A stretch of DNA of 64,000 bases from Ylistrum balloti. Taxonomy: Eukaryota. The position numbers and the translations under genes were made by a program. Where the stretch lies: the NCBI RefSeq assembly GCF_031769215.1, contig NW_026782084.1:62001-126000 (forward strand). The letters are read 5' to 3'. The notes beneath the pieces were generated by a model, which was not told the DNA's origin, made no database searches, and was given only the letters and a program-made list of their open reading frames with translations. Shown here in pieces: positions 4,477 to 55,963 of the stretch (the stretch's first letter is position 1; every line of letters starts with the position of its first letter).

Positions 4477-6057
4477 TTAGTATTTGGCACCTAAAAAGGA
4501 TACATATCTATTAATAATTGACGTCAGCATAGTAACTGTTAGTTACTGTGTTTTCAGTATTGTGCTTCTTATCGCGAACAAAGCAATGGTTTTCTGACCT
4601 GTTTGAGAAATTTTTATTTGATTATTTTATAAATTTTGGTTTATAGATGCATTTTTAGTTGAAATTACTTCGCATACTCAGTGTGCTAAATAACCTACCT
4701 TCTTGTCCACCGAATCCTCCACTTCCACCAAAGCCTCCACTACCTCCGAATCCGCCACCATTGCTTCCTCCAAATCCACCGCTTCCTCCGCCGCTCATTC
4801 CTCCGAATCCACCTTTTCCTCCAAATCCACCATTACCTCCAAATCCACTGCTACCACCAAATCCACCACTTCCTCCAAGGCCGCCACCGTTCATTCCTCC
4901 GAATCCACCTTTTCCTCCAAATCCACCATTACCTCCAAATCCACCATTACCTCCAAATCCACTGCTACCACCAAGTCCACCACTTCCTCCAAGGCCGCCA
5001 CCGTTCATTCCTCCGAATCCACCTTTTCCACCCAATCCTCCAAATCCGCTGCTACCCATACCTCCGAATCCTCCACTACCACTTCCTCCAAATCCACCAC
5101 TTCCACCGCTGCTCATTCCTTCGAATCCACCTTTGCCTCCAAATCCACCACTACCTCCAAATCCACCGCTACCTCCAAATCCACCGCTACCTCCAAATCC
5201 ACCGCTTCCTCCCAATCCGCCATCGCTCATTCCTCCGAATCCACCACTTCCCCCAACGCTTCCTCCTTTGCCACCAAAACCACCTGCATTTCCACCGAAT
5301 CCTCCACTACCTCCGAGACCAGCAGCTCCTCCAAGTCGTCCACTACCTGCTCCGCTCATACCACCAAATCCTCCTTTTCCTCCAAGTCCACCACTACCAC
5401 CGAGTCCACCACTTCCTCCAAACCCTCCACTGCTTCCGAAACCTCCACTTCCTGCGCTTCCCCCGCTGCCTCCTCCAAAACCACCACTTCCTCCGCCATA
5501 TTTCCCTAAATCGATACATAACTTTCATTTAATGTATGGACGTAGAAACGCTTATTATTTATCGCTCAATTCTACAGGCTTCAGTGCTGAAATAATATTA
5601 GTTTTTATTCACCAAAAGTGAATGTATTGTATGTGAAAGGTAAAGGTAATTTCATGATCGATAGCTTATTTATGCAGGTTTGTACTGTTTCATTTACCGT
5701 CTCTTCCTAATTAAACATCCATGTTTACTTATAATCCTTTTAACTAATACTCGTATATGTAGCACATTCCATCTTACAATGATGGCAATTGTGTTGATTT
5801 AGAGTGTTGTTTGTTTTTTAATATTATTAATTTCATACTCTATCTTTGATAAACAGCGATCATAACATACCTTGCAAGTTTATATTTGGTAATTTATCTT
5901 GTTTAGATGTATGTTGATATTAAGATTAATGATAAATGACAGAAACAAGTGTGGTCATTCAGGATCATGTTGATGTTTTACGTCAATGTAATGTAAACCT
6001 ACCTGCAGCGTTGACGCTGACCAGTAAGAGAGCGGTTAAACAGATGTAGGTATTCAT
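4477..6057 (-). CDS. Abductin-like Gly-rich secreted protein, copy A1 (~291 aa)
   Basis: CDS exons 6057-6003 (MNTYICLTALLLVSVNAA G|gt), 5505-4699 (ag|GKYGGGSGGF...GGFGGN/S/K and GGM repeats...GGQE G|gtaggt; 807 nt = 2+804+1), 4490-4477 (ag|GAKY*). Non-coding exon ends 6447; AATAAA at 4422-4427. Signal peptide and GGFGGMGGG-type repeats resemble scallop abductin as I recall it. Confidence 0.88.
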
Positions 6058-6519
6058 GTCGCTGAATCTGAATGAAAGAGTAAGTAATGTATTAGGAATA
6101 TACCACTAAAGACACACGTTTTGTTTAAAACATACATAAAATATTTGAAGAAAAATGAAGCAAAAGAATGGAAAACTGAAGTAAGAAAAAACTTTACAGA
6201 TTATGAAAACGAAAAATTTCTTTTATCAGACTTGATATAAACATTTTGTATCAGTGTTTAAAAGCAATGTCAAAAATACACATGGTTTTACCTTGATTTA
6301 CAGCTAAATATACATGTTAATTCTGTATATTTGAAAATGTAGTCTTTTCCTCGGAAAATCAATACACTTCAACGGAAATGTGATAAACGATAAAGTGGTT
6401 GCCTCAGCTTAAAGATATGGATATAAAAACGGTATAAGGTATTTACCTGTATTCACTTGCGTGCGTCTGTCCTTGGAAATGCAGAGGAGATTTGGCCTGC
6501 ACACCATTGAACACGCAGA

Positions 6520-6551
6520 CTATTTATGCTGGAGAAATGGAAATGACGTCA
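6520..6551 (-). promoter_or_regulatory. A1 core promoter: TATA-like CATAAATAG plus CRE/ATF site TGACGTCA
   Basis: Plus strand ctatttatg 6520-6528 and tgacgtca 6544-6551, upstream of the short first exon whose donor is cag|gtaaat at 6447. Confidence 0.65.
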
Positions 6552-7363
6552 CATGGTCACAAAGAAAAGCCTACGTAATCAAGATTTTTTTTGTGGTCAG
6601 AGATTTTCTGTACAGGAAACCACAGCATTAAACTGCCATTGCGTAACATCGCGTCGTTTGTAACTTTCCTTTCTATCAACTATTGTATAAGTAATCATTG
6701 TCCTTTAATTCTACTGATTGCTTTGTTGATTACAAGACAAACGTATGTACCCTTTACTGCAGTCTTATGTTAATTGCTCTGTTGCAATGAAAGGTGAATG
6801 TTAGGTTGAGGTTCCAAGGCAGGAAATGTACACGACAACGATGGGTTTATTTTCAAAGTAACGTAAGTCGCTCCTGTCTCCTATCTTAAAATTGTTGCAT
6901 CACGCGATTGAAGTCTGAAGGAAAGCAAACGCATAGCACACAAGAAAAACATAAATTGATAAATTCAAGGAAGTCATTTGATATAATATACATGCATATG
7001 TAATATTTCATTTTGAAGTTTGGATTGCATTTCTATCCGTAGCAATTTGATTAATATTTGCTAAAGTAAAACGAAATATGCTAATTTTGCTGTCAACGAT
7101 AAATAAAAACACATTTGTTAAAACATATTGAATTTATAAAAGGATTGAACAACAAGCCTAAAGTCTATCAAAGTTATCTTTGTTGCTTTCGGATATATAA
7201 TATAAAATATACCTACAAAAATAACACAAAGGTTCATCTTTAGGCTTTAAACTCATCTCTCGACACATAAGGTATATGGATAGAACATAAATAAATCAAT
7301 CAATAAAGAGTAAAAAAATACACGAATAAAAGAATATATCGATAAGTTTATGCAAAACTCATA

Positions 7364-7539
7364 NNNNNNNNNNNNNNNNNNNNNNNNNNNNNNNNNNNNN
7401 NNNNNNNNNNNNNNNNNNNNNNNNNNNNNNNNNNNNNNNNNNNNNNNNNNNNNNNNNNNNNNNNNNNNNNNNNNNNNNNNNNNNNNNNNNNNNNNNNNNN
7501 NNNNNNNNNNNNNNNNNNNNNNNNNNNNNNNNNNNNNNN
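7364..7539. other. Assembly gap (176 N)
   Basis: Run of n. Confidence 1.
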
Positions 7540-12824: not shown

Positions 12825-14420
12825 TTAGTATTTGGCACCTAAAATAGAAAACACACACATCAATAATTGATCTCAATGCGTTAAGTGTTACCTTCTCCGC
12901 TCTATTATTAGTGTATCTCTTATCTCGAAAGCAATAATAGTTACTAGCGATATTTGGAGAATATCGTTTTATATCAACTTTTATATATTGCATTTATAGA
13001 TCTAATTTCAATTGAAACTTCTAAATATCTTACCTCCTTGTCCACCGAATCCTCCATTTCCACCAAAGCCTCCATTACCTCCGAATCCGCCACCATTGCT
13101 TCCTCCAAATCCACCGCTTCCTCCGCCGCTCATTCCTCCGAATCCACCTTTGCCTCCAAATCCACCATTACCTCCAAATCCACCATTACCTCCAAATCCA
13201 CCATTACCTCCAAATCCACCATTACCTCCAAATCCACCACTTCCTCCAAGGCCGCCACCGCTCATTCCCCCGAATCCACCTTTTCCGCCCATTCCTCCAA
13301 ATCCACCGCTACCCATTCCCCCGAATCCACCTTTTCCTGCCAAGCCACCACCACTCATTCCTCCGAATCCACTGCTTCCTCCAAATCCACCGCTTCCTCC
13401 CAATCCACCTCCGTTCATTCCACCGAATCCACCATTTCCTCCAAAGCTTCCACCTTTTCCACCAAAACCACCTGCATTTCCACCAAATCCTCCACTACCT
13501 CCGAGTCCAGCAGCTCCTCCAAATCCTCCATTACCTGCTCCGCTCATACCACCAAATCCTCCTTTCCCTCCAAATCCACTACCACCGAGTCCACCACTTC
13601 CTCCAAACCCTCCACTGCTTCCGAAACCTCCACTTCCAGCGCTTCCCCCGCTACCTCCACCAAATCCACCACTTCCTCCGCCATATTTCCCTGAATCGAT
13701 AAATAACTTTACTTGAATATATGAATACAGAAATGCTAATAATTCATCAATTCACTTGAAGAACAATTCCAAAGTCTTTAATATTTAAACAATGTCAATT
13801 TTCAACCACAAAAGTGGAACGTTTGAAGCCATAGTCTCGATTTGTTCGAAGTTAAAGATATAGTTGACACAAAGGGTGTTTTCATGATCGATATATTATC
13901 AATTCTGTAGAATGAAGGTTTATTTAAAATCCTGATGAGTATCGCTCACATATATAACACATTTTGGCTGATAAGGATGCCGGTTACATTAAGTTTGCTT
14001 GTTTTTAAATATTATTAATTCGATAATTGATACTTGATAATTTAAAGACAGCGATCAAAACATGTTTTACTCTCTCATACTCGACACTCGCCATATAAAT
14101 CTTAGTCAGTGCAAATAAGGAACATCAGGTTTTCAAATGAGAACAGAGTATACAGCAAGGAAACGAATAAGCAAACTAATGAGCATCAAACACACCCAGT
14201 TTCATATATGAAAAAAGAATATTTATCAAGGAGATCACTAGGACGACCGAAAAAACTTCCCTATGATTTGTAACAACCTGCATCTTTTGAAACCCCGTGT
14301 TACGAGTTTGACCGTTAGTTGACGACAAAAATCAGGATAATGGGAACATGACCTTGTAAACCTACCTGCAGCGTTGACGCTGACTAGTAAGAGAGCGGTT
14401 AAACAGATGTAGGTATTCAT
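12825..14420 (-). CDS. Abductin-like Gly-rich secreted protein, copy A2 (~241 aa)
   Basis: CDS exons 14420-14366 (MNTYICLTALLLVSVNAA G|gt), 13690-13034 (ag|GKYGGG...GGQG G|gtaaga; 657 nt = 2+654+1), 12838-12825 (ag|GAKY*). Non-coding exon ends 14838; AATAAA at 12783-12788 and 12771-12776. Confidence 0.88.
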
Positions 14421-14910
14421 GTCGCTGAATCTGAATGAAAGAGTAAGTAATATATCACAATACATCTTATGGTGATTATCCGTGATATTACAGCAATAAT
14501 CAAAAATTTAGATTTAATAACTACATATATAAATTTTGATTTAGTTTTGGTCTCTACTTTACACATCACAGAATATTTAGAAATTTAACTTAGTGCAGAA
14601 AAAAATCTTAAAGATTATGATAACGAAACAATTCTTTACTCATGCCTTCACAATAATTTACAGCTAAAAGTATTTTTGGATACTGTACATTTCAAAATGA
14701 AATCTTAACTTCTGAAAATAAATGCAACTAAAACAATTAGTTTCCTTAAACTGTAATATTATAAACGATAAAATTGTGACTTTAGCAAAAGGGAATTAAT
14801 GTATTGATATTATATAAAAAGATCCTAAATTAATTACCTGTGTTCACTTGGGTGCTTCTGTCCTTCGAAATGCAGAGGAGATTTGGCCTGAAAACCATTG
14901 AACAGGCAGA

Positions 14911-14942
14911 CTATTTATACTGGTCAAATGGAAATGACGTCA
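14911..14942 (-). promoter_or_regulatory. A2 core promoter: TATAAATAG plus CRE/ATF site TGACGTCA
   Basis: ctatttata 14911-14919 and tgacgtca 14935-14942, same spacing as in A1. Confidence 0.7.
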
Positions 14943-15624
14943 CATGGGCAGAAAGATAAAGCCTAATAATGAATCTTTTTTGTGGTCAGAGATTTGCTGT
15001 ACAGGAAACCACAACTTTAAAAGTGCCATTACGTAACATCGCGCCGTCTTGTATTTAGCCTTTCTGACAAAAATTGTATCAGTAATCATGGTCATTTAAT
15101 TCCAGAGAAGGCTTTGTTGATTACAAGACAAACGTATGTACCCTTTACTGCAGTCTTATGTTAATTGCTCTGTTGCAATGAAAGGTGAATGTTAGGTTGA
15201 GGTTCCAAGGCAGGAAATGCACATGACAACAACTGATGTCTGGTTTATTTTGTTTTCCATGTCTCCTTTCTCCAGATTGTTGCATCATTTTATTGAAATC
15301 TGTATGAAAGCAAATACTCGGACCGCATTAACTCCCAGCACTACTATTAGTTATTTGGTAAGAGTATTGATAAACTTATTTAATTTCATATACATATATG
15401 TGTAATATTTTATAATGAAGTTTTTATTGTCTTGCTATCCGTAGTTACGTATTCACATTTGCAAAACAATGAACTGAACAGGTGGGTCAATGATGAAAAT
15501 AAAGTACAGAAGGCAATATAAATTAATAATCAATTGCACAACTCAAAATAGACATATTTTTACTATATGGAAGATGTCGATATAGAATGTACTATTATTC
15601 CTTTGCACCTGATCTTATAATCCT

Positions 15625-19758: not shown

Positions 19759-20621
19759 TCAAGAGCTCAAAGCGGCTGAGAAGGAAGGCTATAGCTCGGA
19801 AGAGTAAGTGATGCCTTTCTTGAGAATTTGTTGTGCTGAATAGTGTTTGGTTTGCTAGTTTTCAATCTCAGGCCTGGTAAATATTACCTCCATGTTGAGC
19901 GATCGTATTAATAATTAATAACAAACCTACATTAAAATGAATTGTAACTTTTGGTAGGATGGATTTTTTGAAGTTCCATTACAACATTGCTTTGAATTAT
20001 AACTTGAAGAAATATCTTTCCATCAACGACTACTGCGCTGAATTTGCTATTAGGTTAAGCTTTTCTGATGTTGCAGAAAGAGTGTTTTTGAAAGTGATTT
20101 CTTTGATAAGAGCACAAAAGGTGGGTACTACCAAGACATTGTATAAATCAGAATCAATACGACAAATAAAGGGAGTGCAGGTGTCTAAAATATCTATGTC
20201 ACTGTGCTCTGACAGAAAAAAAGATGAAAATGAAACCAATGAAAACAAACAAATAAGCACACATTAATCTAACATTGCTCTTTTATTAGCTACATGTACC
20301 AAAAAAGTGGATGTAATCGAACTGCCGTCAAATTAATATCCTCCACCTGAAAAAATTAAATAGAGCATACAGGCATTTCAAACTTTATGGATTCTAAGTA
20401 CATTATTTTTCATACCGAAGATGCAGTGTAATATTATGTAATCAATGAAAAATACAAAATCAAATACAAGATAAATACAACATGTTAATAAGATAAGGTA
20501 TATACCTTATGGATCTGAAATATATACATCATCTTTCTTCTCCTTGACATATCAGTAAATGTATGTGACCTCTACAGCAAATCTAGTAATATAATCATTC
20601 TCGTATTTTATTAAATGGGAA

Positions 20622-22951
20622 TTAAATAAACATACCGATTCTGCCGTTTCCACCTCCCATTCCTCCAAAAGGTCTATCGCCCATTCCTCCGGATGGTCCA
20701 CCTCCCATTCCTCCGCCCATTCCTCCTTTTCCACCGCCCATTCCACCGAATGGTCCTCCTCCCATTCCTCCAAAAGGTCCACTGCCCATTCCTCCGAAGG
20801 GACCACCTCCCATTCCACTTCCCATTCCTCCTTTTCCACTTCCCGATCCACCGAAGGGTCCTCCTCCCATTCCACCGAAGGGTCCACCTCCCATTCCTCC
20901 GAAGGGACCACCTCCCATTCCACCTCCCATTCCTCCTTTTCCGCCGCCCATTCCACCGAAGGGTCCTCCTCCCATTCCTCCGAAGGGTCCACTTCCCATT
21001 CCACCTCCCATTCCTCCTTTTCCGCCGCCCATTCCTCCGAAGGGTCCACTTCCCATTCCTCCTTTTCCACCACCCATTCCACCGAAGGGTCCTCCTCCCA
21101 TTCCTCCACCCATTCCTCCTTTTCCACCTCCCATTCCACCAAAGGGTCCTCCTCCCATTCCTCCGAAGGGGCTACCTCCCATTCCTCCACCCATTCCTCC
21201 TTTTCCACCTCCCATTCCACCGAAGGGTCCGCCTCCCATTCCACCGAAGGGTCCGCCTCCCATTCCTCCGAAGGGGCTACCTCCCATTTCTCCACCCATT
21301 CCTCCTTTTCCACCTCCCATTCCTCCGAAGGGACCACCGCCCATACCGCTCATTCCTCCTTTTCCACCGCCCATTCCACCGAAGGGTCCGCCTCCTGTTC
21401 CACCTCCACCCATACTTCCTCCCACACCACCGGACCCACCTCCATATGTACCTGTTCAAATAAATATTCACCCATAGTGATTTAGAATATACAATCTAGG
21501 TTTTCATCTTTCAATACCAATTGCTTACTAATTCACCAAAACGGATTTTCACCAAACGGATATCATCAAAGGTTTCCGTGAAAATTGAAATATTTTGCAC
21601 TCTCTTGTTTCATCGATTTTGAGTTTGAACTAAGAAGCTGTTTCGGGTTTCCTTGTTGCTTTTATATAATTATAACCCAATTCTGATAATAGTAACATAT
21701 TTGACCAATTATCCTTTAACTAACTCATTCGTCTCTTGTGAGCCTTTTAGCATATTTATTTTATATTACTGTTAATATCAATTATGATGAGGTAAGTATA
21801 CAGATAATTAAGTAGTTATTAACATGTTTTTACTACATATTCGGTCAAATAACAAATTCAAGAAGCCAATGGTTTGAAAAAATGATCTTGATGATATGCA
21901 AGCGTTCCGCATTCGATACCAATAATTCAATCATATCAATCCTTAAAATTCTACTAATTTGGCATCAAGTGAGCAAAAAAATCATATCAAAGAAATATAT
22001 CACTCACTGAAAAGTTTACTAAAATTTTAAGCATGTAGGGTTCTCACCAAAAAACAGTGATAAAGGTTAGTCAGAAAGTAGCTACATGTATGCAAAATAG
22101 GAAAGGATTCGGACCAACTTGCCGGATCTGTATCATTTTCTGAATATATATTTCACAGTAAACACGAAAACTCAAATATCATGGACCATTGGATCTAGAT
22201 TAAAACATTTTGAATTTTATGAAATAATCTATTTCATTGATTTTTTCCCTTTTTCTTACATTTTAACGAAATGACAGCTTAAAATTTCATGATATATCTA
22301 ATATTATTTCTGCCTTATTCCAATTAAACAATTTTTTCCAGAAGCATCGTATTTGGAAAAACATATCCTTGCTAACAACCAAACAGATAATCGTAAATGT
22401 TAATGTCTATTGTATTATGTGAGTTCAATTAATACTGAGAATTTAAATCAAAGAATTCAAACTTGATTCTTACTTGTGAAAAAGCAGATATTTTTTCATT
22501 GTTATAATATAGTAAAGTATGCACTTAATCAATTTATAGTTATCTGGAAGTATTGAAAAAATACACATTAATCAATGTTTCCTTTGTGACAAAGGTCGTC
22601 ACGCCCAAGGTATGGGGGCTAGTCAACAATGTTGTTCACGCGCTTTGCTCCCCCGAATTGGCAGACATGATTACAGTTTTCATAGCTAAACTAGAAAAAT
22701 GTAAAATAACAATTTTCATTCTGTTTGCATTTTATTCTCTATCCTCTACACAAAAATGTGCATTTATTCGACTTTCAGTAATGTTTTACCCGCAAGATTT
22801 CATATTCGATAATTTAAAGTGTGAAAGAATCGCCTTCATGCCCGTAAAATTAATAGTGTCCTGATATAAATCCTATTGGAATGAAATCAAACTTACCTGC
22901 TGAACTAACAGCCACAATAAGGCAGAAAGCTAGACAGATGAAGGCATTCAT
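20622..22951 (-). CDS. Abductin-like Gly/Met/Phe/Pro secreted protein A3 (~290 aa); C-terminus uncertain
   Basis: Exon 22951-22897 MNAFICLAFCLIVAVSSA G|gtaagt; exon from 21451 ag|GTYGGGSGG...(GGPFGGM, GGGKGGMGGGM repeats). End either unspliced ..RIGMFI* at 20622 with AATAAA at 20607-20612, or spliced at 20636 (G|gtatgt, frame fits) to EVTYIY* (20571-20552) or DP* (20514-20507). Non-coding exon ends 23738. Confidence 0.85.
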
Positions 22952-23816
22952 TTTAGTTAACTGAAATATAAGAAGGTTAATAAAAGTTAAAACTAATATT
23001 TAATTCAAAATTATAAGTTAAACTATATAATCGTACAGTAGTTTCTAATCCACATGGGTTTTTTTATGAAACAAATAAAAAAAAACAGAAAATTAAATTA
23101 AAAAATGAGTATTTTCGTGACGAGTATCATCACTCTCATATGAATACTTCATGTATAATTTTGTAAATCACATAACTTAATACTTCGCAATTGCAACATT
23201 GTTATACATCATAATAAAGTTATTATGTAATTAAAACAAACCTCCATCAATCCTTTTCTTAATGCTTTATATCAACAAATTAGAAATAGGCTTATCAATC
23301 TCTAATTGATTGTACTGTAAAAACGATTTTATTTATTTAAAATGATACATAGGGAACGGTTGTTAACCATTTTAATGACGAGTTAATGATAAATTTGTAT
23401 TATATCAAATAAGTCGTAATGCTTAAAACATGAAACATGTCATTGAATGACTGCGGGAAATCATTTTTATATGAACTAAATAAATGTAACCTGAAGAGAA
23501 TGCTCTCTGGGGATGTAATCGCTTCATGCTATCAAATTCTATTTCACCTACTTACTCTGATGGTAACGTTTATTACAAATTTAGGAAAGAGTAATTAAAT
23601 TGTGTAGACCATTAACTTAAAATTATAGATGTTATGCATTAATATTCTTACAATTTGATCAAAAATCAAAACTGTTTACATTATGTAAAATATTGTATCA
23701 TATCGTTGATATCTTATTACATGTTTAATTCTCTTACCAGTTCTCGTACTAGTGGAGACAAATCGGAGTCGATGTGGTGAGGAGAATGACACATTGGGAG
23801 GATACAATCAAGTATT

Positions 23817-23838
23817 ATTTATACCGTGCATGACGTAA
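23817..23838 (-). promoter_or_regulatory. A3 core promoter: TATAAAT plus CRE-like TTACGTCA
   Basis: atttata 23817-23823, tgacgtaa 23831-23838; first-exon donor ctg|gtaaga at 23738. Confidence 0.65.
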
Positions 23839-25244
23839 GTCTATACAATTGTTAAGGAAAAGATCAGCTTGTTAAGGTCAATTTACCATGTACTTGTTGT
23901 TATTTATTGACGCCGGTGTAAACAAGGACCACATTTCAGCGCAAAGGCTGTACCATTATTGTAAACAAAACACAGAATTTGCACTTTTTGTGTCAGACAC
24001 ATTCCGGGAAGCATTTCCCTAGTGACATTATCAGCGCGAGGCACGTAAGAGCCGTTAAGAGATATATTTTATCTCTGATAGATGAACAGGTTGTGTTCTA
24101 CATAACATGCTGAAGTTGCATATTCATCCAATCATTACATGTAATTAAATCCAAGACCTTTTTATCATTGTAAATGTTCAACTTAAAACATCAGGGCGTA
24201 CAAATTATATTGTCTTGTTTAGTCAAACCTGAAAGATGTTTTGTATTCAATAATAAATTATCAATGTTTTAAAGAAGTTTTCCTTTCTATAATAGCAAAA
24301 CAAGGTTTAAACAAAACGTGCTATGTAGCTCAGGTTGACATGAAACTCCCACGTACATGTACATGCTCTGAAATTTTTAAAAAGATAATGAAAACGATCA
24401 TTTGTGATGGGACAGAACATACGTAAGTATCTTATTTGTTTTGTTTATTAAACTGAATATCTAATGAGATGTTTATTTCATCTCAATATAAATAGATGAA
24501 TACAGAAAATGTTTTCTTGACTGAAAACTTTCTTTAACAGTTCAAAGTGACATTATGATGCTATAATCTTGTGGCTTCAACAGTTTCAATTTTTTCGATC
24601 TTTTTACATTCTGGGATTGGGAAAAACAAGAAAATACCATCATGTCAACATAATTGTAATCCAAACACAAATTAATTGAGTCTTATGCAAAATATAAACA
24701 AAGAAAAGGTCTACTCAACGTCTCCTGAAAAGATAAAAGGATGAGATCAGGTGTTTCGGAAGAGTAGGTGTCTTTAGCTTCATCGACGACACCCTCCATG
24801 TAAACATTGGTCAATCCAAGTAAGTTGAATAAAACCCTAGTGTGCGTTCACATTATGTTTCTTCCTTGTTTTATACGCGATGCAACAGTGAACAAGTTCA
24901 TATGTCGCATTCTACCCATTTTTATTAATATTTCCAAGAAACGGACATGTGATTCTTATCATTTGTCAGTTGGCTGTTGGCATTTTTTACAACAAATATA
25001 ACAAAGAACAATGACACTTTTGAAAAGTAATTTTATTCAACGAGAAAACATCTAGAAATACAGAAAGTTGAAGCTTGAAAACATCGTGATAGATATAAGA
25101 ACTTTTGATTACAATAAATTATATTCTAGGGGAGTTTAACCGCATCTTCAGAACCTTCGTCCATCTATGGCCCTTTGAAATATATAGAAATATGGTTTTC
25201 TTATTTGCAACCTAACGATTCAATAAGTGTTATCTTTAAAATCC

Positions 25245-25945
25245 TTAATGATACATTCCCCCCATCATTATACTGCCGAACGGAAAATAGCCTCGGCCCA
25301 TTCCACTCATGCTGGTGTCGTCACCTTTGTAGTTAAACTGCCATTCTCCTAGAAAAGAATGAAACAAAACATAAGGTATGAAAAATCTAATCAAAGGAAT
25401 ACATTTTCGTCCAAAAACAAGAAGCGGAAATTTGTTACACTTATATAACTTTTCAATATAATCCTGAGATGGCAAGATGAAGATGAGACTAATAATTGGT
25501 GCGAAAACAACATGAGGTGAGAATATCCCGGTTTATGGTATCTGCTAAACAAATCAGTGTAAAATATTGAAAGTAGACTAGGTTATAGATTAGTGCAAAT
25601 CCTCAAACATATATCGACACTTGTTCGGCCAAGTTCGCTTTTCCTGGTTTCCACACCTTAGGCACACAGCATCACACCCAAAGTATGAAGGAACGAAATG
25701 CAATTTATTTGTGTATTGATGTGTTACATGCATATATATCTGTTGTACATCACTCGTTACATTCTCCAATAATTAATGCCCTTAAATCAACATTATAAAG
25801 ACTAATGAATAACGTTGGCCGCGATAGATACAACTGCAAGCACTGAAAACCACATACCTCCATCCCCTCTCCACATATCCTGTGACAATACTGTAGAAGC
25901 TGTCAGAGTGACAATAAAAACCACAGCAAAACAGAACAGTTTCAT
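25245..25945 (-). CDS. Small secreted peptide, 63 aa (MKLFCFAVVFIVTLTASTVLS-QDMWRGDGGEWQFNYKGDDTSMSGMGRGYFPFGSIMMGGMYH)
   Basis: Exon 25945-25858 (88 nt, G|gtatgt) and exon 25348-25245 (tttctag|GA.., 104 nt) join in phase 1; hydrophobic 21-aa leader; acceptor tttgtttacag just 5' of the ATG. Confidence 0.72.
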
Positions 25946-31820: not shown

Positions 31821-33268
31821 TCACTTCCTATCGTCAAATGGTGTGGCCCCCTTAGGACCTTTCCCCGCTGACGCTTCAGTGCTTGATTGAATTCCACCAC
31901 GTCCGATAAACCCATTCCCAAATCCATGTCCTGTAACCATAGGAAACCGTTGCATGTTGATAGGATTCCAATGCATCATCATATTCTGTAACATTGCATT
32001 GTGTAACATACGTGGGGACTGCCAATGCATATTCGTGTTTGGAAAGCTATGGTCTGGTCTCCGAGGAAACATATAAAATGGCAATCGACCCAAATGAATG
32101 AAGGCTTGTTGGAAAGGTTGCCGTTGAGAGAATGACCTGCCGACGTTGTGCATTGAAGGTGTGTTAAACGGAACGGTATATATATGAGGAATCCAAGAAC
32201 GAAGAGTCTGCATGGACTGCATGTTGTTATTATTACCACGGATGAATGCCGGTCGCCAGTGTCGAGCTGTTGAGTTAAACAATACAATTTCAGGTCACAA
32301 TTTTTATTTTCACATATCTATGAATTTTTGTCAATCGCATATAATTCTGTTTAATTAAAATTGCGTTTTTTCCGGCACAGAATACTTTGAAGTTGTCTTT
32401 ATTCAAATAAATAAAATAATATATGTAATTGTAAACCGCATCCTTTCAGTTTTTGAGTGAGTGATGTGTAATAGATTAATAAAAACTAATTGATAAAAAT
32501 GACAAATTGATCAATAAGTGAACAAATAGAGCGAACACTCCCCAAAACAAACACGTTTTAGAGAATTAGGCATACTTTACATACAGTCAAATCTCATTAT
32601 TTTGAACTCTTATAACTCGAAGTCCCAGAATAATTCGACGTATTTCCATCGGTTCTAGCCAAATTTTACACTTAACTCATAAATAATTTAAATCGCAAAA
32701 TATGTTCGACTGTATTATATATCTTTAAGTAATTATTGTTGACTCTTTCTAATCGATGTTTTTATTCGAAGCATTTATGTAGTCACACTGAATAACACAG
32801 AACATACTAACCTCGAACGTTATTCATCATGTGGTTAATAGCCATTGGACTAGCCATCCCTGCATTAGGCCCCCATTGACTTACACTGCGTGTAATTCGA
32901 TGAGAAAGCGTCTCTGGTTCCAACAAATAACCATCTGCAAACAGAAATTTATATCGATACCCACGTGCCTAGAAAGCTCTTTACAACATAATAATTGATA
33001 AAATTATGCATCATCATAATCACTGATGTGTTGTTTTTACGTATTTTAATGACATTTAAAAAAAATTGGTAATCAAAAACTTGTCTAACGCCTATAGATG
33101 TTGTATTATAAATGCTAAGCTTATATTTCTATTTTGTTGGTATTTCTTTACTCCAGTCAGTAAAATCAACAAATCCTACCTAATATAGCACGCAATTGTT
33201 TACTCACCTGCAATGTTGTAACGCAAAACCGTCGCCAGTCCAAGGATGAAGATAGATGGCAATAACAT
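31821..33268 (-). CDS. Secreted Met/Asn/His/Pro/Arg-rich proprotein (~209 aa) with RITR|S furin-type site
   Basis: Exons 33268-33208 (MLLPSIFILGLATVLRYNIA G|gtgagt), 32934-32812 (tttgcag|DGYLLEPETLSHRITRSVSQWGPNAGMASPMAINHMMNNVR G|gttagt; 123 nt), 32266-31821 (cag|ARHWRPAF...ATPFDDRK*). Non-coding exon ends 33508; AATAAA at 31727-31732. Confidence 0.78.
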
Positions 33269-40187: not shown

Positions 40188-42889
40188 ATGAAGATGAATA
40201 CGTTTTTCAACAAATCCTTTCTCCTACTTTGCCATGTAATCTTGTTAGTGTCTGCTGGAGGAAGTTCTGAAATGATGAAGAAAATGATGGGAGGTATGTA
40301 AATACTGTCAGATTTGCATTTTAGTATTTAACTATAATATCATTTCTATTTTTCCATTTAATGTTCATTCCTTATTAAAACATTTTTGCGACTACTTTTA
40401 TATTTCTATTCATCAAGCTAATCAACAGTATAGACGATTTTACTTGAATGTACATTTGAACTAATCATTCTGTTTAAGTTGTTGATATTGGATAATAACT
40501 ATGTATTCCATTCATAAACGTATGCTTGGAAATAGCATAGAATGGTCGATGCAAAATATGATTTTATTCCAGGAAAAATGATGGGAATGCCAGCAATGCC
40601 GAAATCTATGGAAGGTATGTCTGCTGGTATGATGATGTCCATGTCTAATCCAATGATGCCAATGGGAGCAATGCCAATGGGTAGTATGCCGGTGAGCATG
40701 GGAATGAAGCCAATGGGCGGTATGGGAGGAATGCCTGCTGGTGGAAATCCTTCTGGAATGAAACCTGCAGGTCCGGCTCCTGACGAAATGGAAGGAATGG
40801 GTGCAGGCGAAGAGGCTGGAGCAGCAGCTAGTGCCCAGAAAGGAGGCAGCATGACGAACAATGTCATGATGATGATGGCTCCAATGGGCGGCGGCATGGG
40901 TGGAATGGGCATGATGCCAGGGGCAATGTCTCCGATGATGAAATACATGATGAAAAATAGGATGATGATGATGGGCGGTATGGCAATGAGACCCATGGGA
41001 AGTATGTCCATGGGTGGCATGAAACCGATGTACATGAAACCTACCGGAGGTATGCCAATGGGAGGTATGATGTCAGGTATGCCAATGGGTGGCATGAAAC
41101 CGATGGGCATGAAACCTACCGGAGGTATGCCAATGGGAGGTATGCCAATGGGTGGCATGAAACCGATGTACATGAAACCTACCGGAGATATGCCAATGGG
41201 AGGTATGCCAATGGGAGGTATGCCGAAGGGAGGTATGCCAATGGGTGGCATGAAATCGATGGGAGGTATGCCAATGGGAGGTATGCCAATGGGTGGCATG
41301 AAGTCGATGGGAGGTATGCCAATGGGTGGCATGAAACCGATGGGCATGAAACCTATGGGAGGTATGTCAGGTATGCCTATGGGTGGAATGAAACCGATGG
41401 GTATGAAACCTATGGAAGGTATGATGTCAGGTATGCCTAGTGGTGGAATGAAACCAATGGGCATGAAACCTATGGGAGGTATGATGGGTGGTATGCCAAT
41501 GGAAGGAATGATGGGTGGTATGCCAATGGGAGGAATGATGGGTGGTATGCCTATGGAAGGAATGAAACCTATGGGTATGAAACCTATGGGAGGTATGATG
41601 TCAGGTATGCCTATGGGTGGAATGGAACCAATGGGCATGAAACCTATGGGAGGTATGATGTCAGTTATGCCTATGGGTGGCATGAAACCGATGGGCATGA
41701 AACCTATGGGAGGTATGATGTCAGGTATGCCTATGGGTGGAATGAAGCCGATGGGCATGAAACCTATGGAAGGTATGATGGGTGGTATGCCTATGGAAGG
41801 AATGAAACCGATGGGTATGAAACCTATGGGAGGTATGATGGGTGGAATGCCAATGGAAGGAATGATGGGTGGTATGCCAATGGGAGGAATGATGGGTGGT
41901 ATGCCTATGGGTGGAATGAAACCGATGGGTATGAAACCTATGGGAGGTATGATGGGTGGTATGCCAATGGAAGGAATGATGGGTGGTATGCCGATGGGAG
42001 GAATGATGGGTGGTATGCCTATGGAAGGAATGATGGGTGGTATGCCTATGGAAGGTATGCCTATGGGAGGTATGAAATCAAGTGGTATGGAACCTATGAA
42101 AGGCATGATGGGTGGTATGCCTAAGGAAGGTATGAAACCTATGTCACCCATGCCGTCGAATTCGAAACGTAAGTAAAACAATTTGAATCACACGCTTTAG
42201 TTGTGAATATAATGAATCTTTGAGATATCTTCCTTTTCCCATTTATGAATTTATGAATCAAACATGATATTCTAAAATGGAAATGTGTTCTTGTTCTAAA
42301 CGGAGATGAATACGGGTTGCTTCGGGAGGTCAAGGTCGAGCCCATATTAAACGGGAAATATTTTATTCCATTTTTAGCTTAAATTCTCAAATCAATAACA
42401 ATGAAACATGACATGTTTATGTTAGCAATCTTTAAAGGCTATCAATTTAGGTCAAATGTCAAATAGTTAGAACGCATGTTATTTGCATATGAGAGGATAC
42501 AAGTAATAATCTACAATCGTACAATCGGTGGCCAATTGAAAAGATAATTATCTTATTTACTCTTTGGTTCAAACACAGATGATTTGTTTCTTTGGGGCCT
42601 CCCTTAAAACTATTTTATTACTATTTGTTTTCATCATCGAACGCGATTGATATCGCCTGATCACTTTCTGCTATCACTTGTTCAAACTATTCCACTGTAT
42701 TTCACCTGTATCTTGATTAAGTTACAGGTGCAAGTTTGTATAAATAAGAAAAAATCATATGTATTCAGATCAATGAAGATAATAATACTAATATATATAT
42801 ATACATTTATCTTAAATATTTATATTTATGAATTTTACTGGCACTTCTGTAATGAAGAATATTTTTTTCTTTCAGGAGGATCATACTAA
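40188..42889 (+). CDS. Secreted Met/Gly/Pro/Lys-rich repeat protein (~571 aa; MPMGG, MKPMG, GMMGG repeats)
   Basis: Exons 40188-40293 (MKMNTFFNKSFLLLCHVILLVSAGGSSEMMKKMMG G|gtatgt), 40573-42168 (ttccag|..1596 nt..SNSK C|gtaagt), 42876-42889 (tttcag|RGSY*); AATAAA at 42968-42973. Frames all close. Confidence 0.88.
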
Positions 42890-43569
42890 CGCCTCGGCAA
42901 ATACCAAACATTCTGTTCATCAACTTCATGTCATACTCAGTCTTTCGTGATTTCTTACATATGGAGCAATAAATCTTAATTACAAATGCAGATTTTTATC
43001 ATTTTGTGTTTTTATTTTCGACAGTGCAGCATACACATAATAATACCGAAAAATGATTTGATGCAGAAAGGTTTAATCGATATGACGTCATTTTGTGTAT
43101 ATATTGAAGTATAAAAATGTTTTTCTATGATATCCTTAAACGTGAATGTATTAATAACACTGGAATGATAAACTTCACGTGCAATAATAGATTAATTGGG
43201 AAATTAAACAGCAGAGATTAATTGAAACTTCAAAATGAACAGATGAAGCATAAACCATATCGCAACACCATTGACTTCCTAGATAAATACCGAGACTATT
43301 TCATATCATCCGATCATCAACTCACATTAATCACAATGGAAATATCTTTTTGATTTTTAACCGAAACATCTGCGGACAAGCTTATCTTCAATGAGTTTGG
43401 TGTAGACTATTCTCTTATTTGTGGGAACAGACTGTATACCTCTCCTGGATGATTTGTTTTTGTTTTTTAACAATGCTTATTTTCATCAAATCAGGTCACA
43501 AAAACCTTGTCAAGTCCTTCAGTTCACTTTAAGATATATTGATTGATAATGTTTTATAATAACACGAAA

Positions 43570-47159: not shown

Positions 47160-48105
47160 TGCAGCATAATATGACTGATACAACACCTCGCATACAACAG
47201 AATCATCTATATACACATTAACATAACATGACTGATACAACACCTCGCATACAACAGAATCATCTATATACACATTAACACAATATGACTGATACAACAC
47301 CTCGCATACAACAGAATCATCTATATACACATTAACATAACATGACTGATACAACACCTCGCATACAACAGAATCATCTATATACACATTAACACAATAT
47401 GACTGATACAACACCTCGCATACAACAGAATCATCTATATACACATTAACATAACATGACTGATACAACACCTCGCATACAACAGAATCATCTATATACA
47501 CATTAACACAATATGACTGATACAACACCTCACATACAACAGAATCATCTATATACACATTAACATAATATGACTGATACAACACCTCACATACAACAGA
47601 ATCATCTTGATACACATTAACATAACATGACTGATACAACACCTCACATACAACAGAATCATCTTGATACACATTAACATAACATGACTGATACAACACC
47701 TCACATACAACAGAATCATCTATATACACATTAACATAATATGACTGATACAACACCTCACATACAACAGAATCATCTTGATACACATTAACATAACATG
47801 ACTGATACAACACCTCACATACAACAGAATCATCTATATACACATTAACATGATATGACTGATACAACACCTCACATACAACAGAATCATCTATATACAC
47901 ATTAACATAATATGACTGATACAACACCTCACATACAACAGAATCATCTTTATACACATTAACATAATATGACTGATACAACACCTCACATACAACAGAA
48001 TCATCTATATACACATTAACATAATATGACTGATACAACACCTCACATACAACAAATTTATCTACATCCACATTAACATAATTTCACTGATACAACACCT
48101 CGTAT
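47160..48105. repeat. 57-bp minisatellite, ~17 copies
   Basis: Unit tgactgatacaacacctc(g/a)catacaacagaatcatctatatacacattaacataa(t/c)a; the 314-aa minus-strand ORF is its by-product. Confidence 0.95.
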
Positions 48106-48150: not shown

Positions 48151-48190
48151 TCACTGACGAGTCCCAGAAGGACTAAACACTTGTCAGTGT
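48151..48190 (+). ncRNA. Degenerate solo hammerhead copy (G12 to U)
   Basis: tca ctgacga gtcc cagaa ggac taaa cacttgtc; downstream flank resembles the flank of the array (35230-35330). Confidence 0.55.
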
Positions 48191-50076: not shown

Positions 50077-53000
50077 ATGCTGTCTATAACACTATTCCTG
50101 AAACCGTTTCTTTTGCTGGGACTTGTGTTTGGCTACAGTGCGGGTGGTACTGGAGGTGCCGGAGGTAAAGGAGGTAAGACATGTCTATACACCACACTTG
50201 TTTACTGTCCTGTAATATAAAATGCATTTATGTTCCTATGAATACATCCAGAATAACACGAGTTAATGGTAGCCATGACAGGAAATAAAATTAAATAGCG
50301 GTATGTTTAACAAAACCTACATGATTTGTCAGATCCGTTCTTTCTGTGAAGAATTATTATTGAGTAAATGTTTAAGGGACTAAATGATAAGATTTTGTTA
50401 TTTTTCCCGTGCGTTTATTTTCGGGCAAGCATTGAAATGCTTAAAATTGGACTCTTCACAAAATTATAACACTCTCTGAGGAAAATTGATAAAGATTATC
50501 AGCATCAAACCAACGCTAGTCGACACTCGCTATTGTGTCTATCAATCATCGCTGTTTTGACGTTGTTAATAAAATGGTTATCCAAACTTTACAATATCAT
50601 AATTATCAGAGAGTACAAAAATTTTAACATATATTTAAATTTTGTAATATTTTTATCAGTTATGATATTTATACCTAACCATTTAGTCCCTTTGAATAAA
50701 AAGGTTGTATTGCTTTCAGATAAACTCTCTTTGCATAATATTTTACAAAATGTTCAAGATGTTGTAATATTTTTCAATGATAAAAGAAGATTAATCGGGA
50801 AAACTACTAGAAGATATCGTACGTAATTTATAGAAGACATTTTGTGTGTACATTGTGGACAGGGGTTTAACTTTAAAATCTGAATGGATGTTCATGTACC
50901 ATTAATTGGCTAGACTAGCAAACGGCTCCTATATCAATATCAGGATATAATTATTCCTAGACCAAGATTAATGATATATTTGGTAGTTCGCTAGTACACT
51001 GGCTATGTATCGCTAGCTTTATTATGTCTAATTAAACATTGAAAAACAACAGGTTTTATAACTGATCTCATGTGCATCATAAAGAAATATTCTCTGTATG
51101 ACATGTTTGTGTTGTGTATATAAGATTAGGGTCCTCTCTATATGACATTTTTGTGTTGTTGTGTATATAAGATTAGGGTCCTCTCTGTATGACATTTTTG
51201 TGTTGTTGTGTATATAAGATTAGGGTCCTCGCTGTATGACATGTTTGTGTTGTTGTGTATATAAGATTAGGGTCCTCTCTATATGACATGTTTGTGTTGT
51301 TGTGTATATAAGATTAGGGTCCTCTCTATATGACATGTTTGTGTTGTTGTGTATATAAGATTAGGGTCCTGTCTATATGACATGTTTGTGTTGTGTATAT
51401 AAGATTAGGGTCCTCTCTATATGACATTTTTGTGTTGTTGTGTATATAAGATTAGGGTCCTCGCTGTATGACATGTTTGTGTTGTTGTGTATATAAGATT
51501 AGGGTCCTGTCTATATGACATGTTTGTGTTGTTGTGTATATAAGATTAGGGTCCTGTCTATATGACATGTTTGTGTTGTTGTGTATATAAGATTAGGGTC
51601 CTCGCTGTATGACATGTTTGTGTTGTTGTGTATATAAGATTAGGGTCCTCGCTGTATGACATGTTTGTGTTGTTGTGTATATAAGATTAGGGTCCTGTCT
51701 GTATGACATGTTTGTGTTGTTGTGTATATAAGATTAGGGTCCTCTCTATATGACATGTTTGTGTTGTTGTGTATATAAGATTAGGGTCCTCTCTATATGA
51801 CATGTTTGTGTTGTGTATATAAGATTAGGGTCCTCTCTATATGACATGTTTGTGTTGTTGTGTATATAAGATTAGGGTCCTCTCTATATGACATGTTTGT
51901 GTTGTTGTGTATATAAGATTAGGGTCCTCGCTGTATGACATGTTTGTGTTGTTGTGTATATAAGATTAGGGTCCTCTCTATATGACATGTTTGTGTTGTG
52001 TATATAAGATTAGGGTCCTGTCTATATGACATGTTTGTGTTGTTGTGTATATAAGATTAGGGTCCTCGCTGTATGACATGTTTGTGTTGTTGTGTATATA
52101 AGATTAGGGTCCTCGCTGTATGACATGTTTGTGTTGTTGTGTATATAAGATTAGGGTCCTGTCTGTATGACATGTTTGTGTTGTTGTGTATATAAGATTA
52201 GGGTCCTCTCTATATGACATGTTTGTGTTGTTGTGTATATAAGATTAGGGTCCTGTCTATATGACATTTTTGTGTTGTTGTGTATATAAGATTAGGGTCC
52301 TCTCTATATGACATTTTTGTGTTGTTGTGTATATAAGATTAGGGTCCTCTCTATATGACATGTTTGTGTTGTGTATATAAGATTAGGGTCCTCTCTATAT
52401 GACATTTTTGTGTTGTTGTGTATATAAGATTAGGGTCCTCTCTATATGACATGTTTGTGTTGTTGTGTATATAAGATTAGGGTCCTCTCTATATGACATT
52501 TTTGTGTTGTTGTGTATATAAGATTAGGGTCCTCTCTATATGACATTTTTGTGTTGTTGTGTATATAAGATTAGGGTCCTCGCTGTATGACATGTTTGTG
52601 TTGTTGTGTATATAAGATTAGGGTCCTCTCTATATGACATTTTTGTGTTGTGTATATAAGATTAGGGTCCTGTCTGTATGACATATTTGTGTTGTTGTGT
52701 ATATAAGATTAGGGTCCTCTCTGTATGACATGTTTGTGTTGTGTACAGAAGATTCAAAGAATTTATTTATTTTTTTTTTTATTTTTTGAAGGCGCTAACG
52801 GTGGAGGAAAAGATGGAGGTACAGGAAAGTCTGGTATGGGAGGCGAAGCAGGAGGAGCCATGATGATGCCATCTGGTAATCTTTGTTTCCGACATCCCTC
52901 TGTAATAACAATCAGATAAGATGAATTATGAGATACGTGTTAAGCTGTTTTAGATCCGAAATCATATACAAGAAATTCTGGACAGCGTCCATCACTTTAA

Positions 53001-55963
53001 GATTCATGCCAATTCTTTTCCTTTTTTCTGTTCTCAGCCTCTTGGTGATAAATCTCTTCCTGACACCACATGTATATATGTAGTTATGATGCTACCTATG
53101 ATCACCAAAGACAAGTTCTTACAAAATACCTATAAATAGAAACAAAATGAAAAAGTTACCTACTTGGATTAAAGTTCATCTCATCAGATATTTCATCTCT
53201 CAATTTTAAATTGTCCATTCTGAATATGGCCCCAATTGGCTTCTCTTTTATCTGCAATCTCTTTTTTACATGACTATAAGTGGTATAGACTGGCAAACAT
53301 CGTATGCCTAAACAACATTGATAAACTAGTTAACGAGAACCTTCGGCGCTTTCTCTTAACATAAACGCATTGTTAAAAAATTGAAGGAATTTCTCCATGA
53401 TGTTGCGATTGACATTTTCTCGTTGACGGAAAGTGACGAAGGTTTCCGATTGACTTAACCAAAATTAGGTGAACATTGATTAAGCTTTCATACAATAAAC
53501 GCTTTTTTTTTTTTTTTGGTCAATGTTTGAATAAGAAACCTTTGTCGTTTTATTGCAGGTGGTATGGGAGGTATGATGGGCGGTATGCCTGGCATGGGAG
53601 GTATGATGGGCGGTATGCCTAGCATGGGAGGTATGATGGGCGGTATGCCTAGCATGGGAGGTATGATGGGCGGTATGGGAGGTATGATGGGCGGAGGAAA
53701 AGGCGGAATGGGCGAAGGAATGGGCAGTATGGGAGGTATGATGGGCGGTATGCCTGGCATGGGAAGTATGATGGGCGGTATGCCTAGCATGGGAGGTATG
53801 ATGGGCGGCAAAGGAGGAATGGGCGGAGGAAAAGGTGGAATGGGCGAAGGAATGGGCGGTATGGGAGGTATGATGGGCGGTATGCCTGGCATGGGAGGTA
53901 TGATGGGCGGCAAAGGAGGAATGGGCGGAGGAAAAGGTGGAATGGGCGAAGGAATGGGCGGTATGGGAGGTATGATGGGCGGTATGCCTGGCATGGGAGG
54001 TATGATGGGCGGCAAAGGAGGAATGGGCGGAGGAAAAGGTGGAATGGGCGAAGGAATGGGAGGTATGATGGGCGGTATGCCTGGCATGGGAGGTATGATG
54101 GGCGGCAAAGGAGGAATGGGCGGCAAAGGAGGAATGGGCGGAGGAAAAGGTGGAATGGGCGAAGGAATGGGAGGTATGATGGGCGGTAAAGGAGGAATGG
54201 GCGGAGGAAAAGGTGGAATGGGCGAAGGAATGGGAGGTATGATGGGCGGTATGCCTGGCATGGGAGGTATGATGGGCGGCAAAGGAGGAATGGGCGGAGG
54301 AAAAGGTGGAATGGGCGAAGGAATGGGAGGTATGATGGGCGGTATGCCTGGCATGGGAAGTATGATGGGCGGTAAAGGAGGAATGGGCGGGGGAAAAGGT
54401 GGAATGGGCGAAGGAATGGGAGGTATGATGGGCGGTATGCCTAGTATGGGAGGTATGATGGGCGGTATGCCTGGCATGGGAGGTATGATGGGCGGTATGC
54501 CTAGCATGGGAGGTATGATGGGCGGCAAAGGAGGAATGGGCGGAGGAAAAGGTGGAATGGGCGAAGGAATGGGAGGTATGATGGGCGGTATGCCTGGCAT
54601 GGGAGGTATGATGGGCGGTATGCCTAGCATGGGAGGTATGATGGGCGGCAAAGGAGGAATGGGCGGAGGAAAAGGTGGAATGGGCGAAGGAATGGGAGGT
54701 ATGATGGGCGGTATGCCTGGCATGGGAAGTATGATGGGCGGTAAAGGTGGAATGGCCGAAGGAATGGGCGTTATGGGAGGTATGATGGGCGGTATGCCTG
54801 GCATGGGAGGTATGATGGGCGGTATGCCTGGCATGGGAGGTATGATGGGCGGTATGCCTAGCATGGGAGGTATGATGGGCGGTATGCCTAGCATGGGAGG
54901 TATGATGGGCGGTAAAGGAGGAATGGGCGGAGGAAAAGGTGGAATGGGCGAAGGAATGGGCGGTATGGGAGGTATGATGGGCGGAAAAGGAGGAATGGGT
55001 GGAGGAATGGGCGGTATGCCAGGTATGGGAATGGGAGGTATGGGCGGAGGAATGGACGGCATGGGCGGTATGATGGGCGGTAAAGGAGGAATGGGTGGAG
55101 GTATGGGCGGTATGCCTGGTATGGGAGGTATGGGCGGTATGCCTGGTATGGGAGGTATGGGCAGTATGATGGGCGGAAAAGGAGCCATGGGCGGAGGTAT
55201 GGGCGGTATGCCAGGTATGATGAATGGAGGCGGATCTGGAAGCGGCGGGAACGCTATGGGTAAGTTAATTACTAAATTACTAGGAATTAAGTTTAAGTTT
55301 CCGTTTATTAATTTTCTAAACACTTAAATTGATAATATCCATTCACTCTTACCCTGTTCATATAAATCAGAATTATGGACTGGTTCGATATTTACTTCCG
55401 TAAACAAAATTATCTGGATATAATCAACACGGCAAATGTATTCCGCTAACGTTTTCAGACCTAACGCCCATATATATATATATGCACGTGCAAGAAAACT
55501 ATATAACTACAGATTAAATCATCAATGATGATAACAATTATTTCCAAATCACTTCCCGTGTAACTATTTATTTAGAGGATATTAACAATAAATCAACAGT
55601 TTAGAATGAAAAATAAAATCTTTCGTCTGTCTGTCGCTTCTTGTGTAATATCTCAGACCATCACGCCACCTAGTGGCGACGTATAACATAGAAGAAATAA
55701 TTTCCACCTAATTCCAAGTGATCATACGATTGATTTTTTTTATATGTATATAATAGATACTCAAGTGATTTCAGACAAGAAATCAGCAATTTTAAACACC
55801 TGTAACATTATTTTCCAGTTCAAGATGATTATCGTGTCTGCCATGGTTTTTTTTCCCAAGATTTTGCCGTTTTCAAAATGACATTCTCAATACTTGCTAG
55901 TAAGATCCGGCATATGTCCTAATAACACATTTGCACATTCCAGGTGGTGGAAAGAGCTACTAA
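50077..55963 (+). CDS. Secreted Gly/Met-rich repeat protein (~633 aa; GGMMGGMPGM and GGKGGMGGGKGGMGEGM repeats)
   Basis: Exons 50077-50173 (MLSITLFLKPFLLLGLVFGYSAGGTGGAGGKG G|gtaaga), 52792-52875 (gaag|ANGGGKDGG..MMMPS G|gtaat), 53559-55259 (tgcag|..1701 nt..GNAM G|gtaagt), 55944-55963 (ccag|GGGKSY*); AATAAA at 56212-56217. Confidence 0.88.
51092..52745. repeat. 47-bp (44-bp variant) intronic minisatellite, ~35 copies
   Basis: Unit tatgacatgtttgtgttgttgtgtatataagattagggtcctctcta; some units lack one gtt; lies between the 50173 and 52792 exons. Confidence 0.97.

Follow-up and report, generated by a model that had tools for sequence, protein, structure and literature searches.

We analyzed a 64,000-nt stretch of contig NW_026782084.1 of the scallop Ylistrum balloti (positions 62,001 to 126,000; hereafter the window), in which a cluster of seven genes for secreted proteins, G1 to G7, is predicted between 4.4 and 56 kb, three of them resembling the gene for the hinge-ligament protein abductin. 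The original prediction was that this locus encodes structural proteins of the hinge ligament, and the gene content it described was recovered here in full. The five long Gly- or Gly/Met-rich reading frames are present at 4658-5524(-), 13011-13751(-), 20625-21455(-), 40536-42173(+), and 53531-55324(+), and the two remaining genes, G4 and G5, encode secreted peptides that contain Met, as proposed. The three leaders quoted at the time are present letter for letter (MNTYICL... starting at 6057(-) and again at 14420(-), MNAFICL... at 22951(-)), and the claim that every gene in this interval has a signal peptide agrees with the seven models, each of which opens with a leader of signal-peptide type in an exon ending in phase 1. 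Signal peptides were called by eye, from a hydrophobic core and small residues ahead of the cut, and the exon boundaries and splice junctions of all seven models are predictions from the DNA. All models are spliced, with GT..AG introns that are all in phase 1 and with zero internal stops. The interval runs from the first base of the last exon of G1 (4477) to the stop codon of G7 (55963), and its remainder consists of satellites and decayed repeats, with no other recognizable gene between G1 and G7.

Abductin-type genes and the Tyr-stop last exon

The case for abductin begins with features published for the scallop protein. Bay-scallop (Argopecten) abductin is made as a 136-aa precursor, the first 19 residues of which are probably a signal peptide, and its N-terminal region of about 19-20 residues carries Tyr4, Cys6, Cys10, and Tyr20 (PMC13052691). 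The Gly/Met-rich domain that follows has the consensus decapeptide GGFGGMGGGX, the overall composition is 58% Gly, about 12% Met, and about 1% Pro, and Tyr is placed at both chain extremities by one review. The leaders of G1 to G3 are likewise hydrophobic and 19 residues long, ending in A-G or A-A-G, and have Y4, C6, L10, and Y21 in G1 and G2 and F4, C6, C10, and Y21 in G3, so that each differs from abductin at one position and has its Tyr, which stands right after the cut, shifted by +1. Because the leader is not low-complexity, its match to the abductin positions carries weight. Behind it, G3 has 16 copies of FGGMGGG and 13 of G[GP]FGGM[GSN]GG, in which Pro usually replaces the Gly before Phe, and G1 and G2 have 21-23 copies of GGFGG and three of GGFGGM[SN]GG, with KGGFGGM(S/N)GGG recurring every 32-45 residues (17-45 in G2); these units are close variants of the published decapeptide and do not reproduce its consensus. 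Further likenesses to abductin are a Gly content of ~58%, repeats of F-G-G-M-G-G-G type, interspersed Lys and Met, Tyr at both ends, and predicted disorder; the G3 repeat exon has an AlphaFold pLDDT (predicted local distance difference test) of 43 and no secondary structure. At that value the prediction gives G3 no confident fold, and no polyproline-II bundle in particular. The abductin likeness put forward in the original prediction is thus borne out for G1 to G3 by the residues at set positions of the leader, the Tyr at both ends, the Gly content, and a close variant of the repeat, and on these sequence features their assignment to the abductin family, with a role in the hinge, appears well grounded.

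It is clear from the gene models that G1, G2, G3, G6, and G7 end in the same way. In each, the repeat exon stops at a consensus phase-1 donor a few codons ahead of the read-through stop, and a polypyrimidine-AG acceptor 200-700 nt downstream is followed by a last exon of 14 nt (20 nt in G7) ending TAY-TAA, with AATAAA lying 36-78 nt past the stop (248 nt in G7). After splicing, G1 and G2 have the same tail (AKY); their read-through tails differ. The 64 kb contain four copies of the pattern AGGWGNNNNNTAYTAA, always at a modelled last exon on the right strand, against 0.14 expected, and as it was drawn from those sites and G1 and G2 are duplicates, this counts as about three independent cases. 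With this exon, the mature products of G1 to G3 carry exactly two Tyr, one near each end (residue 2 and the final residue), a placement that suggests, from the predicted chains, that they are cross-linked at their ends. Tyr is likewise the final residue of G6 and G7, and three more lie inside the G6 chain. The contexts of Lys are fixed as well, being GGKGGFGGM in G1 and G2, GGGKGGMGGG (five times) in G3, and MGGKGGMGGG (12 times) in G7; the KGGMGGG motif is therefore common to G3 and G7. Taken together, the five gene models follow a shared plan of a probable non-coding first exon, a phase-1 signal exon, one large repeat exon, and a tiny last exon that adds Tyr. No description of abductin gene structure, genomic organization, or clustering was found in the open-access literature searched, and within that literature, the Tyr-stop last exon and the tandem abductin cluster are first described here.

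To judge from their sequences, G1 and G2 are recent tandem duplicates. The coding sequence of the leader is identical in the two, their introns are 35-65% identical, and their repeat exons are ~90% identical with insertions and deletions of whole repeats; differences fall 10/10/30 by codon position, and the ratio of nonsynonymous to synonymous substitution rates (dN/dS) is 0.26 at a dS of 0.17. An upstream block at 0.4 kb, containing TGACGTCA, a TATA box, and a GTAA donor, is 86% identical between them, and the DNA between this block and the leader exon is 43-60% identical. The candidate promoter of G3 has a similar layout with weak sequence likeness, and G1 to G3 have in common a site like the cAMP response element (CRE), TATAAATA, and a short first exon. 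All genes but one have an acceptor-like tract 9-25 nt ahead of the ATG, from which a non-coding first exon is predicted. A search for one promoter motif in all seven genes found none, the CRE and TATA layout being confined to G1 to G3 and an orphan site near 43.1 kb. At this site, a full CRE (TGACGTCA) is followed by TATAAA (43083-43115(+)), ~200 nt beyond the poly(A) signal of G6. It belongs to no gene model and might serve as a distant promoter for G7, whose leader exon follows an acceptor-like tract.

Table 1. Predicted exons, candidate promoters, and products of the seven genes (window coordinates; the stop codon of each Tyr-adding last exon is TAA)
Gene	Feature	Position	Strand	Remarks
G1	Predicted product		-	291 aa; Gly 56%, Met 3%
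G1	Candidate promoter and non-coding first exon	6440..6600	-	TGACGTCA, CATAAATAG, CAG/GTAAAT donor; CRE at 6544
G1	Signal-peptide exon	6003..6057	-	MNTYICLTALLLVSVNAAG; donor GTAGGT, phase 1
G1	Repeat exon	4699..5505	-	GGFGG units, KGGFGGM every 32-45 residues; donor GTAGGT
G1	Last exon, 14 nt	4477..4490	-	G-A-K-Y-stop; AATAAA 49 nt beyond
G2	Predicted product		-	241 aa; Gly 57%, Met 3%
G2	Candidate promoter and non-coding first exon	14831..14990	-	TGACGTCA, TATAAATA, GTAA donor
G2	Signal-peptide exon	14366..14420	-	MNTYICLTALLLVSVNAAG; coding part same as in G1
G2	Repeat exon	13034..13690	-	Donor GTAAGA
G2	Last exon, 14 nt	12825..12838	-	G-A-K-Y-stop
G3	Predicted product		-	294 aa; Gly 58%, Met 13%
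G3	Candidate promoter and first exon	23715..23890	-	TTACGTCA, TATAAATA, GTAA donor ~85 nt on
G3	Signal-peptide exon	22897..22951	-	MNAFICLAFCLIVAVSSAG; Cys6 and Cys10
G3	Repeat exon	20636..21451	-	GPFGGMGGG and GGGKGGMGGG units; FGGMGGG x16; donor GTATGT
G3	Last exon, 14 nt	20333..20346	-	G-G-G-Y-stop
G4	Predicted product		-	63 aa; Met 11%
G4	Exon 1	25858..25945	-	Signal peptide, then QDMWRGDG
G4	Exon 2	25245..25348	-	Product ends MMGGMYH
G5	Predicted product		-	209 aa; Met 8%
G5	Signal-peptide exon	33208..33268	-	
G5	Exon 2	32812..32934	-	
G5	Exon 3	31821..32266	-	Non-repetitive, 8% Met
G6	Predicted product		+	571 aa; Gly 27%, Met 35%
G6	Signal-peptide exon	40188..40293	+	MKMNTFFNKSFLLLCHVILLVSA, then GGSSEMMKKMMG
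G6	Repeat exon	40573..42168	+	35% Met; GGMPMGG and MKPMGMKPM units; donor GTAAGT
G6	Last exon, 14 nt	42876..42889	+	R-G-S-Y-stop; AATAAA 78 nt beyond
G7	Predicted product		+	633 aa; Gly 52%, Met 29%
G7	Signal-peptide exon	50077..50173	+	
G7	Small Gly-rich exon	52792..52875	+	Phase 1 on either side
G7	Repeat exon	53559..55259	+	GGMMGGMPGMGG and MGGKGGMGGG units; donor GTAAGT
G7	Last exon, 20 nt	55944..55963	+	G-G-G-K-S-Y-stop

Methionine-rich genes, small orphans, and the surrounding sequence

The two Met-rich genes, G6 and G7, have the Tyr-stop last exon and phase-1 plan of G1 to G3 and encode basic products. G6 contains 13% Pro, 7% Lys, and 3.5% Asp plus Glu, with a pI of 10.0, and is built from 22 MKPM and 12 GGMPMGG units; G7 has 2.4% Asp plus Glu and a pI of 9.9. 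The small exon of G7, with phase 1 on both sides, could be skipped. Most of the first intron of G7 is occupied by a 47-bp satellite (51091-52742; 35 copies, 94% alike) that stops ~50 nt short of the acceptor of this small exon. Reads from a second, DNA-like sample (run X1), 1-2% different from the assembly, leave the frame of G6 open, with two synonymous changes, five replacements, and an in-frame deletion of 15 nt (five codons) at 40656; the last exon is unchanged, and the preceding intron has 11 differences. This sample is a second individual or haplotype carrying a repeat-length variant of G6. As a test of common ancestry among G3, G6, and G7, DNA alignments scored only marginally above codon-shuffled controls.

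Database searches agreed with the earlier statement that several members belong to no recognized family, Pfam containing a family for none of the repeat exons, nor for G5. The protein search with the G6 repeat exon returned low-complexity look-alikes only (FliN linkers and the abalone protein P0013) and no self-match, the ESM Atlas had no usable match for G6, and an exact-product look-up of the G6 open reading frame (ORF) found nothing on record. The same type of search with the G3 repeat exon gave 8000 low-complexity candidates, none significant, and was uninformative, as the 136-aa abductin lies outside the length range searched. The lack of a self-match in the protein collections suggests that these genes are not annotated there.

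A comparable ligament protein of another bivalve is the ligament methionine-rich protein (LMP) of Pinctada fucata, the main scaffold protein of its ligament, which is secreted, 303 aa long, and made of ~30 MMMKPD units (PMC7591529). In the Met-rich scaffold proteins of nacre and prism (NU-5 type), a Met-rich region is combined with Asp/Glu-rich or Gln-rich regions, which are reported to be missing from ligament proteins (PMC7591529). No acid-rich or Gln-rich region is present in G1 to G3, G6, or G7, which therefore differ from the NU-5 type, and G6 and G7 resemble LMP in being secreted (from the signal exon), very Met-rich, and free of an acid-rich region. G6 further shares with LMP its basic character, a Met-Lys-Pro motif, and, by eye, a Met-rich N-terminal stretch of GKMM.M.P type. 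However, LMP has Asp in every unit, whereas G6 has 27% Gly, GGMPMGG and MKPMG units, and a spliced-on terminal Tyr; the likeness is thus one of theme, without demonstrated sequence homology. Membership of G6 in the LMP family was ruled out, as it has no MMMKPD unit, and a search of the window for LICP or LMP motifs found none. By analogy with LMP, we propose that G6 may have a similar scaffold role. A second ligament protein of Pinctada fucata, pfu_aug1.0_1662.1_66071.t1, was detected by mass spectrometry and ends in ASIY (PMC7591529). Compared by description, it shares a Met-rich C-terminal part and the C-terminal Tyr with G1 to G3, G6, and G7, but its N-terminal two thirds consist of Asn/Gly/Trp repeats that are absent in G1 to G7.

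The look-alike P0013 of Haliotis rufescens (478 aa) has a signal peptide and ~20 GGMPMGGMPSNGG units like those of G6, although at E = 0.2 the match reflects low complexity only. Unlike G6, it carries a C-terminal domain with Cys and lacks an exon for a terminal Tyr, and its source is a gastropod, an animal without a hinge. The name under which it is recorded, 'translation initiation factor IF-2-like', is a misnomer, and the protein is a candidate Met-rich matrix protein of gastropods.

The two small genes are orphans, no relatives having been found for either. The mature G4 peptide is ~42 aa long and acidic (pI 4.8), with an N-terminal Gln following the predicted cut, and G5 is a basic (pI 11.7), mostly disordered protein of 189 residues. 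For exon 3 of G5, a word search gave one candidate, which was not significant, and the only match of a full HMMER scan against 1.84 billion representatives was a spurious repeat protein.

The window as a whole is AT-rich animal DNA (GC content ~33%) with two assembly gaps, 7364-7539 and 61112-61304. The first falls between the 3' end of G2 and the promoter of G1, in intergenic DNA that is AT-rich, ~0.8 kb upstream of the G1 TATA box and 4.5 kb from the last exon of G2. ORFs that appear to span it are runs of X, and as no modelled exon borders it, frame continuity is not at issue; a small exon may hide inside it. Nine other ORFs of at least 90 aa (seven within the interval and two flanking it) have no Pfam family. 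Outside the cluster is a thioredoxin-domain exon of TXNDC17 (60408-60704(-); Pfam PF06110, E = 5e-9), and the second gap sits 0.4 kb from it, possibly within TXNDC17. Two satellites, at 47165-48101 (57-bp unit) and 1446-1864 (30/120-bp unit), contain long spurious ORFs in several frames. Another, with a 45/90-bp unit, lies at 34822-35228; it had earlier been read as hammerhead ribozymes, and no Rfam match at the gathering threshold was found anywhere in the window. At 62061-63337(-), ORFs with weak likeness to the C-terminus of tyrosine recombinases (phage integrases) and to the QRICH1 domain are probably remnants of a Crypton-like mobile element.

Interpretation of the cluster

The best explanation for these data, and one that we regard as reasonably probable, is that the locus is a scallop abductin gene cluster enlarged by relatives, with G6 and G7 built on the same gene plan. 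The original prediction of a structural cluster for the hinge ligament holds in this respect for G1 to G3, on their abductin features, and extends to G4 to G7 through linkage and analogy only. The suggested co-regulation of the cluster would, for G4 to G7, again draw on linkage and analogy; a shared layout of CRE-like site and TATA box is seen at G1 to G3 only. By analogy, a role in the hinge ligament is plausible for G6 and G7, and the case for such a role is weak for G4 and G5.

Several results weigh against an abductin cluster. The likeness to abductin was judged on features published in two reviews and not by alignment, and the exact GGFGGMGGG motif has no copy in G1 to G3; G3 has GPFGGMGGG instead of GGFGGMGGG, and G1 and G2 contain little Met (3%) and much Ser and Asn. 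Pro makes up 6% of G3 and 0% of G1 and G2, compared with about 1% reported for abductin, and at 241-294 aa, the three products are ~2x as long as the published 136. With regard to the enlarged cluster, G7 DNA aligns with G6 over 650 nt and with G3 over 445 nt, in both cases at 68% identity, which is barely above shuffles of synonymous codons. The motifs MMMKPD, MKPD, and KPDMM do not occur in any frame of the window, leaving G6 without the LMP repeat. Finally, a 10-kb query over G2 and G3 matched one sequencing run, which was DNA-like.

Much of this would also fit a locus in which only G1 to G3 are hinge proteins and G4 to G7 serve other mantle secretions, such as shell matrix, periostracum, or a similar scaffold, as neighbors or diverged offshoots of the abductin genes. 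Met-rich insoluble proteins are present in the nacre, prism, and ligament of pearl oysters alike, and P0013 is a secreted protein with GGMPMGG repeats from a hingeless gastropod, so that a high Met content is not in itself a sign of the hinge. Both observations count against a ligament role for the whole cluster, as does the failure to find at G4 to G7 a promoter motif shared with G1 to G3, and G5 and G6 have no relatives able to carry a functional label. Nevertheless, we consider this division of the cluster unlikely, given the rare Tyr-stop last exon and phase-1 plan that G6 and G7 have in common with G1 to G3, the KGGMGGG unit common to G7 and G3, the absence from G6 and G7 of acid-rich or Gln-rich regions such as those reported for the Met-rich proteins of nacre and prism, and the uninterrupted 51-kb extent of the cluster, with no unrelated genes in between.

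There is also the question of whether all of the models are working genes, as some could be chance frames in GGN-rich simple DNA, decayed copies, or Pro-rich genes of the opposite strand. Antisense frames are open too in every repeat exon, a self-match is absent from the protein collections searched, which suggests no annotation, and for G1 against G2 the antisense Pro frame has a dN/dS of 0.33, nearly as good as that of the Gly frame and a further point against the assignment made here. The two ratios are close because the wobble base is common to both frames; dN/dS therefore does not separate them, and the strand call rests on the leader, splice, promoter, and poly(A) signals. On that footing, the possibility appears remote, since the repeat frames are joined in phase to a signal exon, consensus splice sites, a last exon, and AATAAA on the same strand, with a TATA box and CRE on that strand at G1 to G3, the leaders match published abductin positions, and the assembly keeps frames of 0.65-1.7 kb intact, as does the second sample for G6. 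Least probable of all, to the point of being nearly negligible, is that the genes belong to a different Gly-rich secretion, such as byssus, egg coat, or defence peptides rich in Gly, and resemble abductin through convergent low complexity, for although Gly-rich repeats arise repeatedly and searches with such queries are uninformative, the non-repetitive leader with Tyr4, Cys6, Cys10, and Tyr20/21 as in abductin is not low-complexity, and mature proteins of 18-56 kDa with a terminal Tyr are unlike short defence peptides.

If the locus is an enlarged abductin cluster, its products might act as follows. The mantle epithelium that forms the hinge would secrete basic (pI about 10), disordered, Gly-rich chains, and the single Tyr at each chain end would allow end-to-end or network joining by tyrosine cross-links. 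The regularly spaced Lys-Met modules (KGGFGGM and KGGMGGG) would offer extra sites for cross-linking or oxidation, the product would be an entropic rubber that reopens the shell, and separate ligament layers could be supplied by paralogues that differ in Met content (3 to 35%). Here we infer the site of secretion, the cross-linking chemistry, the co-expression of the genes, and the role of G4 to G7. In resilin, cross-links are formed between tyrosines. Resilin and elastin share with the chains described here the principle of disordered Gly-rich chains turned into rubber through covalent cross-links; resilin differs in its many internal Tyr, as opposed to Tyr at the two chain ends, an arrangement that would yield end-linked chains, and the families are unrelated. 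Tyrosine end-linking has long been suspected for abductin, according to a review. A more far-reaching version, which we offer tentatively, is that the five genes make up one family of end-functionalized rubbers in which the 14-20 nt last exon installs the C-terminal Tyr, with G6 and G7 forming a new Met-rich structural class for particular layers or oxidation states of the fast-swimming scallop hinge and G4 and G5 encoding accessory peptides of the ligament.

To our knowledge, no natural protein rubber other than abductin is known to function in compression, and its cross-links are still unknown. The protein has been known essentially from cDNAs of 1997, and the three abductin paralogues at this locus are concrete test sequences. 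As mature G1 to G3 have Tyr at their ends only and Lys-Met modules at regular intervals, the question of cross-linking becomes directly testable. Two further candidate structural proteins, without detectable relatives, are G6 with 35% Met and G7 with 29%, and if they are truly in the ligament, they would link scallop abductin to the Met-rich ligament proteins of pearl oysters and would provide new designs for recombinant elastomers.

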